A DNA stretch of 64,000 nucleotides from Histomonas meleagridis 2922-C6/04-290x (Eukaryota > Protista > Parabasalia). Every line of letters begins with the position of its first letter. Position 1 is the first letter of the stretch. Positions 9,923-26,196 of the stretch are shown here, in pieces. Where the stretch lies: contig JAANOX010000276.1 of NCBI GenBank assembly GCA_020184695.1, forward strand, positions 62,001 through 126,000. Reading direction: 5' to 3'. The notes beneath the pieces are model-generated. The model searched no databases. It worked only from the letters and a program-made list of their open reading frames with translations, and was not told the origin of the DNA. The position numbers and the translations under genes were made by a program.

Positions 9923-10639
9923 TTAGGCATTGGAGAATACTTCAAAATTCCGAGGTCGATTTAATAATGTATCGATTGAAATAAACTCACAAGGATCTAA
10001 TGAGTGTGGTTTTGGCTTTGCTAATTCATAATATTCTTTAACCATGGATATTTCACCAGGTATTACATAGCTCTTGTGAACTACGCCAATTGACTCAAGA
10101 ATATAAGCAATTTGATAAAGCTTGCAAACAGTTGTCTTGTATCTCCCATTATTTCTTGAAAGAAAAGTCCCCATTTTCTTAACATCCATTGTATCTGTTT
10201 TGTTTGCATAAAAAAGCATTACAAAGGAAACAGTTAATGAAGATATTGAGATGCATTTTTCGTCAGGAAATAGATTTACATTCTTTTCTACCAACTCTTT
10301 TAGGTCGGCGAAGGTCTTTTTGATGTTAGAAATCCCTAGCCAGTTTATGCAATCGACGCTAGGCTTTTTGCAGCAGCCAACAGCTTCAAGAACATTAATC
10401 AAATCATAAAATCTTCTTCTTTGGAAATTAAATTTTTCACATATTGCAGATATTGGATAAATTTTGAACTGGTGTGATTCCGCGTAGTTTATGAAGGATT
10501 GGATATTCATTCTGAATGAATCGGTTGTCTTTATTTCTGGTGGCTTATTTAAAATGCTTTCTCGTTTCACCAATTTTGCAGGCTCAATTTGTAAGGGGAT
10601 ATTTGGGGAAAAAAATTGGGGATTGACTGTGCCGAGCAT
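9923..10639 (-). CDS. E2F/DP-family winged-helix transcription factor with two DNA-binding repeats
   Basis: QRRRFYDLINVLEAVG matches the E2F RRxYD motif; second degenerate copy VCKLYQIAYILESIG. First in-frame ATG at 10639. Confidence 0.85.
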   Translation of the reverse strand: MLGTVNPQFFSPNIPLQIEPAKLVKRESILNKPPEIKTTDSFRMNIQSFINYAESHQFKIYPISAICEKFNFQRRRFYDLINVLEAVGCCKKPSVDCINWLGISNIKKTFADLKELVEKNVNLFPDEKCISISSLTVSFVMLFYANKTDTMDVKKMGTFLSRNNGRYKTTVCKLYQIAYILESIGVVHKSYVIPGEISMVKEYYELAKPKPHSLDPCEFISIDTLLNRPRNFEVFSNA

Positions 10640-11432
10640 ATAAAATGAAGTCACTAATTTGAATGGATGAATGGGAAACCACTGAAAAAGCTGACATTGG
10701 CCACATGTTTGAATGATGGATAACCGAATTTTTACTATGGCTTGTTATGGTCAAAAATTTATATCGACTTCAAAATCAATTGACATGCGATCGGGATTAC
10801 GCAATTTATCGCGTAAACAACACAAATTTCTTAACAAATTAAAAAATTCTGTGTTTAAAAACATCGGCACCATAAACAACGAAACAACCACCTGAATTTA
10901 TCCAAAAACTGTGGATAAAACTAACTCCTCAACTCAATGAAATAAAAGCTAAAATGCATTGATTTCTTAGTGCCCACACAAACAAGTATTTAAAGTTCAA
11001 TCTATCATAATATGAATAATACAAAAATTGAATATTTACATCTTCTCGATGTTTCAAGTTGTACCCTGAACCAATGAAATTCTGAAGTAATTCCGTTCCA
11101 ATCAATATTAATAGAAAAATATCCTTATCATAAAAAAACTATAAGCATTCTTTATATTCGAACGTAATGTTACAGGCGTTGAACGGGAAATGTATAGTTA
11201 AATTGTTCTGGTTGTATGCATGGTTTTGGTAAATAAAAATTCCGACAATAAAAAATTATTGCTTCTTGTTTGTAATAAAATGCTACACAAGTGTTACCCA
11301 CTGTATGTCGAATTTCAAGAGGTAATAAATTTTAGTATTTTGGTGTTAATACTTTTGTGATAATGAAAAAATTTGCTCATTGATGAAGCTCATCATCATT
11401 GGGGTGCCCGAAAGACGGTTCAGTTCAAAATC

Positions 11433-11440
11433 AACGGTTT
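11433..11440 (+). promoter_or_regulatory. M3 (Myb-type) core promoter element upstream of the snoRNA host transcript
   Basis: AACGGTTT matches the trichomonad M3 consensus DRCSGTTD and lies ~30 nt upstream of the 5' splice site. Confidence 0.5.
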
Positions 11441-11470
11441 GGCCATCCATTTCTCAAAAAAGAAAGAAGT

Positions 11471-11562
11471 GTATGTTTTCCCCTGATGAGACAGTACGGA
11501 CCTGTTCTGATTATAGATGATTCGTGCTTGTCTGATGGAAGTATCGACATTCTAACACATAG
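11471..11562 (+). other. Spliceosomal intron (92 nt, trichomonad type A) in an apparently non-coding transcript
   Basis: 5' splice site GTATGT at 11471 and fused branch/3' splice site TCTAACACATAG at 11551-11562 (consensus ACTAACACACAG). Confidence 0.8.
11478..11540 (+). ncRNA. Box C/D snoRNA, snR56/U25-like (predicted SSU rRNA 2'-O-methylation guide)
   Basis: C box CTGATGA 11483-89, D' CTGA 11507-10, C'-like ATGATTC 11517-23, D CTGA 11532-35, terminal stem TTCC/GGAA. The D' guide ACGGACCTGTT is antisense to the conserved SSU motif AACAGGUCYGU. Confidence 0.85.
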
Positions 11563-12206
11563 ATATTCTCAATCTTTTCCTTAGGTAACCTATGGTTATT
11601 AATCGTACATCTTAGACAGTAGCTTATCTTTGCTAAGCTTTGAATAAACAATCTAGTTTTTTACTTTCTGTTTTTATTCAATGTATTGTTTCATGCTACA
11701 TTTATTATACAATAGAAAGAATGAAAACCTTCTCTCTGTTTTTATAAAAAAAATGCGCCTTCACTCATAGGAAATTGTAATAATTAATAATTAATAACTT
11801 AAGAAAATTCTTACAAAAAATTAAATTTGCGCAAACTATCAACCAAGTAAAGCCCTACGGACCTTTTAAAACAATTCCAATAATTTTTGAAATAACTTGT
11901 GAATTACATGTTTCACAATGATATCACTGTTAATAATATCAATTGGAATATTCCAATTGATTTTTTAAAAATGAAAAAAATTATATATCCATTATTGCCA
12001 TTCACAACAAATTTTTTGAACTTTTCTTTATGGGATAATGCCCAAAATTAAGAACCTATAAATAGGGAATTCATCTGCACTGGGCACAATTCATTGCCCA
12101 TAAACGTTTTTTCACTACAATTTTGAATGAGTTAAACGGCTATTATTTTTGAAAAGGTTTAGCAGCATCAAAATGTTTGATGTGGTGATTGTTTACTTAT
12201 GGAAGT

Positions 12207-13562
12207 TTACATTTCGTCATCTTCCTCTTCTTCACCATCTTCGACTGATTCAGAAGCAACTTCATCATAATCCTTTTCAAGGAGTGCAAGATCTTCACGT
12301 GCTTCAGGGAATTCAGCTTCTTCCATACCTTCACCTACGTACCAATGAACGAAAGCTCTTTTAGCGTACATAAGGTCGAATTTATGGTCGAGTCTACTCC
12401 AAGCCTCAGCGATAGCAGTAGTGTTAGCCAACATGCAAACAGCGCGTTGAACCTTAGCAAGATCACCACCAGGAACAACAGTTGGAGGCTGATAGTTGAT
12501 ACCCATCTTGAAACCAGTTGGGCACCAATCGACGAATTGGATTGTGCGCTTTGTCTTGATTGTAGCTACGGCGGCAGATACATCCTTAGGTACGACATCA
12601 CCACGGTACAATAATGTGCATGCCATATACTTACCGTGACGTGGATCGCATTTAACCATCATATTAGCTGGCTCGAAAAGTGAGTTCGTGATTTCGGCGA
12701 CAGATAATTGTTCGTGATATGCCTTTTCGGCTGAGATGACTGGTGCATATGAACAGATTGGGAAGTGGATACGTGCATATGGAACAAGGTTAGTTTGGAA
12801 TTCGTTGAAATCGACGTTGAGTGCACCATCGAAACGAAGAGATGCAGTAAGGGAAGAAACAACTTGACCAATCAAACGGTTCAAGTTGGTGTAAGTTGGC
12901 CTTTCGATATCTAATGCACGGCGGCAGATATCATAAAGTGCTTCGTTATCGACCATGAATGCGCAATCAGAATGATCAATCATAGCATGGGTGGCGAGGA
13001 TTGAGTTGTATGGCTCGACAACTGCTGTTGATACTTGTGGTGCTGGATAAACTGTGAACTCGAGCTTGGACTTCTTGCCATAATCGACAGAAAGACGCTC
13101 AAGAAGAAGTGAACCAAAACCAGAGCCTGTGCCGCCACCGAAGGAGTGGAAGATAAGGAATCCTTGAAGACCAGTGCATTGGTCAGCGAGTTTACGGATA
13201 CGATCAAGAGTCAGATCGATGATTTCCTTACCAACGGTATAATGACCACGGGCATAGTTATTGGCTGCGTCTTCTTTGCCATTGATGAGTTGATCTGGGT
13301 GGAAAAGTTGACGATATGTACCAGTACGGACTTCATCCATACATGTGGGCTCGAGATCTACAAAGACTGCGCGCGGGACATGTTTGCCTGAGCCCGTTTC
13401 GGAGAAGAAGGTGTTGAAGGCATCATCGCATACACCGATAGTTTTATCGGAGGGCATTTGGCCATCTGGCTGAATGCCGTGCTCAAGGCAGTAGAGTTCC
13501 CAGCATCCGTTACCGATTTGAACGCCGCATTGACCAACATGGATAGAAATAACTTCACGCAT
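12207..13562 (-). CDS. TUBA: Alpha-tubulin
   Basis: [11 protein letters not shown] start, GGGTGSG motif, K40 retained, parabasalid-type [11 protein letters not shown]; Inr-like TCACTT ~12 nt upstream of the ATG. Confidence 0.99.
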
Positions 13563-14278
13563 TATGAAGAATGAAGTGACAGCGAAAAAGATAAACGGAC
13601 AATTATTTGAGAGCTATAATAACGTATTAATTTCAATGAAATAAACGGTTATTGGCCAATGAATTTTTATCGTTTTCAAACGACAAAAAAGTGCGATAAT
13701 TCGAACAGAGTACTGTTAACGTTTGTAAAATAAAATGGGCGGTGCAACGTAGAGGTGTTCTGCAGAAGGAGCTGAAGCACATCTGTTACCCCCGCACATG
13801 GATAACGTTGAATACAAAAGAAGCAAAAATTGCGTGGCGGTTTTATTTAACCAATTTTAACACAAAAACGAAATGTCATGTAAAGACGATAAGTACTCAA
13901 CCGTGCAAATTGTCAGATAAAATGAAAGTTTTTTGGACTTTTAAAACCGTTGTTTGCTTTGAAAATGTTCTCGCTCAAAAACAAGAATAATACAATGCGA
14001 TCATTTATTAGGGCTGAACACTCAAAGCGCAGAAATTTATTTTTATAGATTGTGGTCAATTTTTTGCGGAAAGAGAAATTTTGGTAAAGAATTTCTGGCA
14101 GATGAAAACTATTTTCTCTTCAAATAAAATGGATTTTTAATATAAAAATATTACAAGCTGCTTTTGATATTAAAAAAATTGTTGAGAAATTTAATATTAA
14201 TGCTGTATTTGAACACAAACATTATTTTTTTTCTTCAGCGAACAGCGGTTTTGATCGTCATTTACTTCATTTTTTTGG

Positions 14279-14863
14279 ATGGATGAAGTATCAAAATACA
14301 AAATTGTTCTTACTGGAAGTGCTGACGTCGGTAAAACATCTTTGTTGACTCGTATTACAAAAAATTATTTTTCCAAAACATATAATCCAACTGTTGGAAT
14401 TGGATTTGGATTTTGGGAAACAGTAGTGGAAGGACACACAGTCAGACTGCAAATTTGGGATACTGCAGGAACAGAAAGATATCAATCTATAACTCCAATT
14501 TATTATCAAAATGCAGAAGCAGCACTTATATGTTATTCCTTAAAACAAACAGAAAAAGAATCAGAAGAAGCAGTAAAATTTTGGGTTAAGAAATTTTTAG
14601 ATACTGTACAATCTAAACCAATATTTATTGTAGGAAATAAGAGAGACAAAAATGATACGATATCAGATGAAATGGAGAGGTACCTCAAAGAGCAAGGAAA
14701 ATATAAGTTATACAAAGTGTCTGCTAAAACTGGTGAAGGAGTAATTGATCTTTTCAGCAGTGTAGCTAAAGAGGTTTGGAAAAACTCATTTCCAAAATCC
14801 GAATTTTTGGAACAAAATACGAGGGTTTCTGGTCCTCCGCAAAAAACGAGTTGCTCATGCTGA
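14279..14863 (+). CDS. Rab-family small GTPase
   Basis: GSADVGKT, WDTAGTERY, NKRD, SAK motifs and a C-terminal CSC prenylation motif. Confidence 0.95.
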   Translation: MDEVSKYKIVLTGSADVGKTSLLTRITKNYFSKTYNPTVGIGFGFWETVVEGHTVRLQIWDTAGTERYQSITPIYYQNAEAALICYSLKQTEKESEEAVKFWVKKFLDTVQSKPIFIVGNKRDKNDTISDEMERYLKEQGKYKLYKVSAKTGEGVIDLFSSVAKEVWKNSFPKSEFLEQNTRVSGPPQKTSCSC

Positions 14864-25617: not shown

Positions 25618-26169
25618 TTAATGAGTTGCAACTTCGAAAACTGTCTTAAGACCAGTCAAACGATGGTATGCAGCTGCAAAACCGTTAAGACGATCTTCAA
25701 CTCTTGTCTTGTCATGGGCGTCAAGGGTGACATATGTTGTTTGCTTTCCATCGGTGTCATAGTGGGTACGCTTTGCAACGATTGCTGTTGGGTATACAAC
25801 ATCATCAAGAAGGCCTTCGTGAACAGCGCGGAGTGTACGTCCAGCATTACGGATGGCCTTGTAACGGCGACCTGGTTGTGGTGTCTTTGGAAAAGCACGA
25901 CGTTTGGCAACGATGACAACTTGAGAATTTCCAAGTTTCTTTTCAAGTTCTGGAACAAGAGCTCCTTGAATTTGGTGGTAAGCTGAAATTTGCTTGTATG
26001 GAACTTCAACAATAACAACTTTAAGTCCATTAACAGTAGCTTCTTTAGCACCAGTGATCTTGAGAAGATTCATGGCTTTTTCGTTAGCAGCACCCTTGAT
26101 TTCAGTGAGTGCTGTTGCAACTTGTTTTTCGAGAGCTGTTGCTTCACCTTTTTTGTCGATGATGCTCAT
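25618..26169 (-). CDS. RPS7: 40S ribosomal protein S7 (eS7)
   Basis: LVPELEKKL, VVIVAKRR, GRTLRAVHEGLLDDVVYP and YHRLTGLKTVFE motifs. True start is ATG 26169 (MSIIDKK). Confidence 0.95.
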   Translation of the reverse strand: MSIIDKKGEATALEKQVATALTEIKGAANEKAMNLLKITGAKEATVNGLKVVIVEVPYKQISAYHQIQGALVPELEKKLGNSQVVIVAKRRAFPKTPQPGRRYKAIRNAGRTLRAVHEGLLDDVVYPTAIVAKRTHYDTDGKQTTYVTLDAHDKTRVEDRLNGFAAAYHRLTGLKTVFEVATH

Positions 26170-26175
26170 TTGCAG

Positions 26176-26196
26176 AAAGGGCCACGCATAACCGTT
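26176..26196 (-). promoter_or_regulatory. M3 + M5 core promoter of rpS7
   Basis: On the minus strand AACGGTTA (26196-26189) is followed by CCTTT (26180-26176) 6 nt before the ATG. This arrangement is known for trichomonad ribosomal protein genes. Confidence 0.7.

Follow-up and report, generated by a model that had tools for sequence, protein, structure and literature searches.

The box C/D snoRNAs closest to the RNA described here guide methylation of one site in helix 34 of the SSU rRNA, in the decoding centre: Gm1428 by snR56 in yeast, Gm1490 by U25 (SNORD25) in human, Gm1431 by snoR19 in Arabidopsis and Gm1506 by CD1 in Dictyostelium. Splicing, debranching and exonucleolytic trimming form the standard route to intronic snoRNAs, and a few introns of the intron-poor yeast carry box C/D snoRNAs (U18, U24) that are released in this way. 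The yeast hosts are protein-coding; human U25 lies in an intron of the non-coding UHG (U22 host gene). Intronic box C/D snoRNAs in non-coding hosts are well known; what is new here is the lineage and the very compact version.

Trichomonads have only a few dozen introns, and the reason for their keeping a full spliceosome is unclear. The type A introns of T. vaginalis start with GTATGT, end in CTAAC-N4-AG at a branch-to-AG distance of 7 nt, and are 41–196 nt long (Vanacova 2005; Wang 2018, PMC6260720). In the latter study 22 of 41 matches to the Vanacova motif were dropped as lying in non-transcribed intergenic regions, and 10 more type A-like sequences were found outside protein-coding genes. 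The only prior hint of snoRNAs in such introns that was found is a mention of "intronic snoRNAs (our unpublished data)" in T. vaginalis (Simoes-Barbosa et al. 2008). In Giardia, like the organism studied here an intron-poor metamonad with a short conserved signal flanking its snoRNAs, ncRNA 3' ends carry the 12-nt motif CCTTYNHTHAA, common to trans-spliced introns (PMC3510501, Hudson et al. 2012). That motif is no splice site but a signal for the cleavage of mono- or dicistronic precursors, and the Giardia snoRNAs are not intronic.

The window, by which we mean the whole 64-kb stretch of Histomonas meleagridis DNA that was analysed (28% G+C), contains an intron-like cassette in a 1.5-kb gap between an E2F/DP gene and a tubulin gene, on the strand opposite to both. 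An earlier note on this DNA had described it as a box C/D snoRNA encoded in the intron of a non-coding host transcript. The features of the region are as follows.

9923-10654, minus strand: flanking gene, E2F/DP winged-helix protein (Pfam)
11434-11445, plus strand: M3/Myb-recognition-like motif AACGGTTTGGCC, 26 nt before GTATGT, putative promoter
11446-11470, plus strand: putative exon 1, at most about 25 nt if the start follows the M3-like motif, free of ATG
11471-11562, plus strand: intron-like cassette, 92 nt, GTATGT...TCTAACACATAG, read directly from the sequence
11471-11476, plus strand: GTATGT, 5' splice-site motif, read directly
11477-11541, plus strand: box C/D snoRNA, about 65 nt (boxes, terminal stem, strict pattern search, fold)
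11477-11481 with 11537-11541, plus strand: terminal stem, 5 bp, TTTCC with GGAAG, read directly
11484-11489, plus strand: C box TGATGA, preceded by C at 11483 (CTGATGA)
11496-11506, plus strand: D' guide ACGGACCTGTT, 11 nt, ending the 17-nt spacer after the C box
11507-11510, plus strand: D' box CTGA, read directly
11515-11520, plus strand: C' box AGATGA, read directly
11521-11531, plus strand: C'-to-D spacer TTCGTGCTTGT, TTCG its only conserved part
11532-11535, plus strand: D box CTGA, read directly
11551-11562, plus strand: TCTAACACATAG, fused branch/3' splice-site motif, branch A at 11555, 7 nt before the AG
11563-11660, plus strand: putative exon 2, non-coding, its end set by the poly(A)-signal-like TAAA
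11592-11615, plus strand: first-ATG ORF of putative exon 2, 7 codons
11643-11648, plus strand: AATAAA/TAAA, followed by a T-rich stretch
12207-13562, minus strand: flanking gene, tubulin (Pfam)

Direct reading found every sequence element listed by the earlier note at its place. The RNA has C and D boxes, internal D' and C' boxes and a terminal stem for which there is covariation, and these parts of the claimed complete C/D'/C'/D snoRNA stand; the C box core TGATGA is perfect, with the R position of RUGAUGA occupied by C, which is not a purine. When the snoRNA was folded in isolation (MFE -18.5 kcal/mol, z -2.29), the terminal stem was closed, and the TTCG of the C'-to-D spacer was able to pair with CGGA of the guide as an internal stem that would place D' and C' side by side. 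In agreement with the claim that it is nearly the whole intron, the snoRNA fills the GTATGT...TCTAACACATAG frame almost completely: it starts 7 nt past the first base of the intron and stops 14 nt short of the branch A (about 15 had been estimated).

The frame has the GTATGT, the 7-nt branch-to-AG spacing and, at 92 nt, a length within the range of about 40–200 nt that mark type A introns. Compared with the T. vaginalis type A consensus RCTAACACACAG, its 3' motif shows two departures, a T at position 1, as in type B introns, and a T at position 10 (TAG, not CAG). Validated type A introns lie in protein-coding genes or UTRs and their splicing is established by RT-PCR, whereas the cassette in the window has a non-coding context and is known from its motifs.

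The guide ACGGACCTGTT is complementary to SSU AACAGGUCCGU. Counting by the D+5 rule, the C at 11502, five bases upstream of D', is predicted to pair with the first G of SSU AACAGGUC (CAGG), the same helix-34 G that is selected by the D' element of U25, snR56, snoR19 and CD1; in the Rfam alignment the U25 guide likewise picks the G chosen by the window guide. The earlier assignment of the target to the snR56/U25 site is upheld by the D+5 register, by the equivalence of the sites in the literature and by the covariance search described below. A difference lies in the guide itself, which reads ACGGACC where the other guides have ACAGACC (G for A). With the common SSU variant AACAGGUCUGU, which has a U, pairing is kept through one G-U. 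The region upstream of box D was considered as a second guide and rejected: at 10–11 nt, with TTCG as its only conserved part, it is probably too short and too poorly conserved for that role.

An Rfam search of the window returned no family at gathering score for the locus and no SSU rRNA gene of the organism. With permissive settings SNORD25 (RF00054, in clan CL00049 with snR56) was the best match in the region, at 21.4 bits (E-value 0.055 in 501 nt and 0.18 in 1651 nt), and the alignment covers the whole model, with the C box, guide and D' region matching. The comparison with snR56 and SNORD25 that had been suggested as a check thus gave the expected family as best match, at a score below its gathering threshold of 39 bits. 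The RNA, much shorter than U25 at about 65 nt, would be an isofunctional guide to SNORD25 and, by descent, a putative member of the family.

Genome contigs were also scanned for the 18-mer target. The SSU variant AACAGGUCCGUGAUGCCC was found in 12 eukaryotic SSU genes, none of them parabasalid-like in length or ITS; viral contigs gave one match, without rRNA, and a literature search for the target 11-mer returned nothing relevant. The 12 records, all filed as bacterial MAG contigs but with a eukaryotic SSU (L005, L011, L018, L019, L031, L038, L041, L052, L053, L059, L061 and L067), are cases of contamination of bins. Several have 5.8S and LSU genes adjoining the SSU, and the SSU of L018 contains a group I intron.

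A chance resemblance, with neither a snoRNA nor an intron present, might be suspected from the missed Rfam gathering thresholds and from the AT-richness of the window, in which short motif matches are many (GTATGT occurs 25 times, against a single CTAACACAYAG). The combination of motifs is another matter. On both strands of the 64-kb window only this locus has a GTATG[TA]..CTAAC(N4-5)AG frame of 200 nt or less, and none of 300 first-order Markov shuffles of the window yields one. A strict search for TGATGA/D'/C'/D with a terminal stem of at least 4 bp likewise gives a single match in 64 kb, as against 0.005 per shuffled window. Taken with three other genomes in which the guide is identical and the stems covary, these counts leave chance scarcely credible, and the orthologues effectively refute it. 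The snoRNA is almost certainly real. Pattern and sequence searches found no further copies of the cassette in the 64-kb window or in viral contigs.

Two of the orthologues occur in published tables of Trichomonas introns. Callejas-Hernandez et al. (PLoS Pathog 2025, PMC12316389) list in their S3 Table "additional putative introns" that were "not validated by RNAseq". There, row 15 for T. vaginalis (chr_II:6862534-6862648, 115 nt) and row 10 for T. stableri carry the identical 11-nt guide, followed by CTGA, 4 nt of loop, GATGATTCG and a second CTGA, all inside GTATGT...ACTAACACACAG. As in the window, a C/D cassette with an identical guide stands in a GTATGT...CTAACACAYAG frame; the Trichomonas cassettes differ in their greater length (115 nt), in having an extended stem of 12 bp and a C box of degenerate sequence (ATGGTGA), and in the canonical ACTAACACACAG. 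The remark on the T. vaginalis row is "Not assembled, Low coverage", and most sister cassettes are marked "No RNAseq evidence". The T. vaginalis orthologue and five other cassette snoRNAs are absent from the supplement of Chen 2011.

The third orthologue was the single locus returned by a pattern scan of JGI metagenome contigs. It lies on an 87-kb contig of an uncultured parabasalid, L001, which is identical to an ENA assembly contig (L073). In feature searches one protein of L001, and likewise one encoded near the cassette in the window, came out nearest to clusters whose known members are mostly Parabasalia. Its cassette reads as follows.

13050-13147 of L001, 98 nt: GTATGT, GGGAG, ATGATGA, the same guide, CTGA, GATGATTCG, CTGA, CTCCC, ACTAACCTTCAG

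The four sequences, two of which are near-identical, were compared by eye for Trichomonas and with MAFFT for the window and L001. The 11-nt guide is invariant in the window, T. vaginalis, T. stableri and L001. The boxes are kept in all four; the window and L001 have them in perfect form, Trichomonas in degenerate form, and the internal D' and C' boxes are conserved throughout. The terminal stems differ wholly yet remain complementary (the window pairs TTTCC with GGAAG, L001 pairs GGGAG with CTCCC, and Trichomonas pairs GGCT with AGCC and has an extension). The spacers are unrelated, the orthologues having TTCG followed by unrelated bases. All four sequences keep GTATGT, CTAAC, the AG and the distance of 7 nt from branch A to AG, and L001 differs in the four bases that separate CTAAC from AG; changed bases at a kept spacing are what is expected if a spliceosome, and not a factor binding a fixed 12-mer, reads the signals. 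By the motif rules of Wang 2018 (PMC6260720) the conserved parts of the cassette are those that a spliceosome is predicted to read. At the level of sequence, the orthologues in Trichomonas and L001 show an architecture that is old and under selection, and the intron-type frame around the snoRNA is very probably itself a conserved, selected feature.

The surroundings of the cassette are non-coding. Between 10900 and 11770 there is no ORF of note on either strand, and the flanks hold no recognisable protein remnant. The putative exons are without coding potential: no ORF longer than 7 codons follows the cassette, in line with the 7-aa ORF claimed for the spliced product, and the one of that length is opened by the first ATG of putative exon 2. 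Putative exon sequence is not conserved between the window and L001 (MAFFT). The M3 element claimed upstream is borne out as an M3-like motif that is conserved in L001, where GGCGGTTTTGGCC stands about 30 nt before the GTATGT; CGGTTT(T)GGCC is common to both. M3 is a Myb-recognition-like core promoter element of T. vaginalis in the literature. Motifs of this kind, scored on a degenerate consensus, are also found 27–35 nt before two ORF starts in the window.

14244-14251: M3-like AGCGGTTT, 35 nt before the ATG of the ORF at 14279 (plus strand)
About 26189-26196: M3-like AACGGTTA, 27 nt before the ATG of the ORF at 26169 (minus strand)

The motif at the cassette, AACGGTTTGGCC, fits the M3 consensus. 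These positions suggest that the M3-like element may be a working promoter motif in this genome. The near-matches AACGGCC and AACGGTC precede two more ORFs of the window. Just after the AATAAA of putative exon 2 there is a hairpin at 11664-11719 (MFE -9.9 kcal/mol, z -2.29), overlapping a weak Rfam match of H/ACA type (16 bits, E-value 3.7).

In L001 a TAAA stands about 20 nt beyond the cassette, and 89 nt beyond the cassette is the start of an ORF of 301 aa. It is conceivable that the L001 cassette lies in the 5' UTR of this ORF. Such a position, the lack of an ORF in the exons of the window and the phrase "remnants of non-transcribed genes" used by the authors of the T. vaginalis list (PMC12316389) would all agree with a relic intron, left by a protein-coding gene that has decayed around a snoRNA and intron signals which persist as they are still needed. 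The same compact layout (M3-like motif, some 25–30 nt, cassette, near TAAA) is nevertheless found in two distant parabasalids, row 15 of T. vaginalis carries no remark on a nearby ORF, and the window flanks are free of any recognisable protein remnant; moreover, some 18 orphan cassettes in T. vaginalis fit a class of genes better than repeated decay. We regard gene decay as quite improbable and favour a dedicated, minimal non-coding gene. The 301-aa ORF (13236-14141, plus strand) and a 310-aa ORF (12050-12982, minus strand) flank the L001 cassette divergently; both have GGA[IV][FY]-type repeats and no Pfam match, and they may be paralogues. A search for further contigs with the downstream ORF returned only L073.

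Transcription was examined in four RNA-labelled runs of the same organism, which contain all sampled words of 11100-12000 and 11436-11665. Contigs of three RNA runs and one DNA run were then compared with the locus; after a filter that hides contigs, a single one, from an RNA run, was placed on the window, and the other three runs gave none.

10915-11752, undirected: RNA-run contig (run X3, Logan) of 838 nt with a mean word depth of 237.5, colinear with the genome and still containing the cassette

This contig is unspliced and lacks the 11470^11563 joint; Logan contigs are undirected, drop variants and show presence, not absence, and RNA libraries can contain DNA. It begins 520 nt upstream of the M3-like motif, in a stretch (10915-11433) without an ORF of more than 58 codons that comes from a non-coding transcript of greater length, from merged or antisense transcripts, or from carried-over DNA. 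As the contig starts so far upstream of the proposed start, the short exon 1 is not established: of the short exon said to follow the M3 element, the ATG-free interval 11446-11470 stands and its limits do not. A search for RNA-assembly contigs encoding the small ORFs of the window found none on record.

The unspliced contig agrees with another reading, in which the snoRNA gene is independently transcribed and nucleases mature the RNA from an unspliced precursor, the splice motifs serving the spliceosome or some other factor solely as marks for processing or assembly, with exon ligation absent or irrelevant. The 18 such cassettes of T. vaginalis, none with a validated junction in published pipelines (PMC12316389), and the closeness of the snoRNA to both splice signals point the same way, and the Giardia 3'-end motif offers a metamonad precedent (PMC3510501). 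It is the nature of the conserved pieces that speaks against it: they are exactly those of type A splicing, including the 7-nt spacing kept in L001 despite changed bases, and a transcript with such signals is by default a spliceosome substrate. The term "intronic snoRNAs" in the 2008 paper of a T. vaginalis laboratory also runs counter to it. On balance we consider maturation from an unspliced precursor unlikely, though it is the main competitor.

We lean instead, with some reserve, towards an intronic cassette of a tiny non-coding host gene, excised by the spliceosome from between throw-away exons. Our confidence goes no further since no junction was seen in the contigs compared, the only RNA contig is unspliced, and the snoRNP would lie within 7 and 14 nt of the splice signals. 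The claim that splicing releases the RNA gains no support from the one contig and stands as a prediction from the conserved type A frame. The host gene would consist of an M3-like promoter, a very short exon 1, one 92-nt intron and a short exon 2 that bears a TAAA signal. It would have one intron and one snoRNA against the eight of UHG; its splicing is predicted from motifs. Compared with the yeast hosts it is non-coding, and its snoRNA nearly fills the intron. The spliceosome would excise the cassette, the lariat would be debranched, and exonucleases would digest it back to where the snoRNP shields the RNA; for the ligated exons no separate function is expected. With the splice signals 7 and 14 nt from the snoRNA, snoRNP assembly and spliceosome binding could interfere with one another. 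The product, a single-guide box C/D snoRNA, would be the parabasalid counterpart of U25/snR56 and would 2'-O-methylate the helix-34 G of SSU rRNA.

The statement that such a gene had not been described for parabasalids needs qualification. No snoRNA is named at the orthologues in PMC12316389, where snoRNAs are mentioned only generically, for 5'-UTR introns, and a 2026 long-read re-analysis of T. vaginalis makes no mention of snoRNAs in its text; the orthologous sequences themselves have been published in PMC12316389 as unvalidated introns, and intronic snoRNAs of T. vaginalis were alluded to in 2008. In the intron catalogues published for T. vaginalis and T. stableri, some 20 perfect type A motifs in each genome are left out of account as unvalidated or "inactive". 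The orthologues show that at least one of these frames a deeply conserved guide for rRNA methylation, and inspection by eye suggests that nearly all may do so: rows 1–18 of the T. vaginalis S3 list (PMC12316389) all have a C-like box, CTGA/CCGA boxes and flanking complementary stems. These roughly 18 orphan cassettes, counted by eye, compare with 39 validated type A introns in the species. Rows 9, 10 and 12, and rows 8 and 13, are duplicated copies. To the eye, most type A rows of the T. stableri list look like box C/D cassettes as well.

A broader proposition, which we put forward tentatively and think somewhat doubtful, is that across Parabasalia a sizeable fraction of all long (type A) introns exists solely for box C/D snoRNAs, in minimal one-intron non-coding genes that predate the split between Histomonas and Trichomonas. 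If this were true, the "inactive introns" of the Trichomonas literature would be misread snoRNA genes, and snoRNA production would be a main selective reason to keep a type A-competent spliceosome; snoRNA release as the reason for spliceosome retention, which had been raised with the locus, is speculation. It would turn retention of the spliceosome into a testable matter, namely whether snoRNA output depends on the splice signals, and the connection of intronic snoRNAs with non-coding host genes, familiar from animals, would then hold in Metamonada too. Published data are hereby reinterpreted, and snoRNAs are supplied that RNA surveys missed. Three validated UTR introns of type A in T. vaginalis (S2 rows 6, 15 and 24 of PMC12316389) are 100–102 nt long, and they sit in two Prp18 paralogues (5' UTR) and in Lsm3 (3' UTR), all of them genes for splicing factors.
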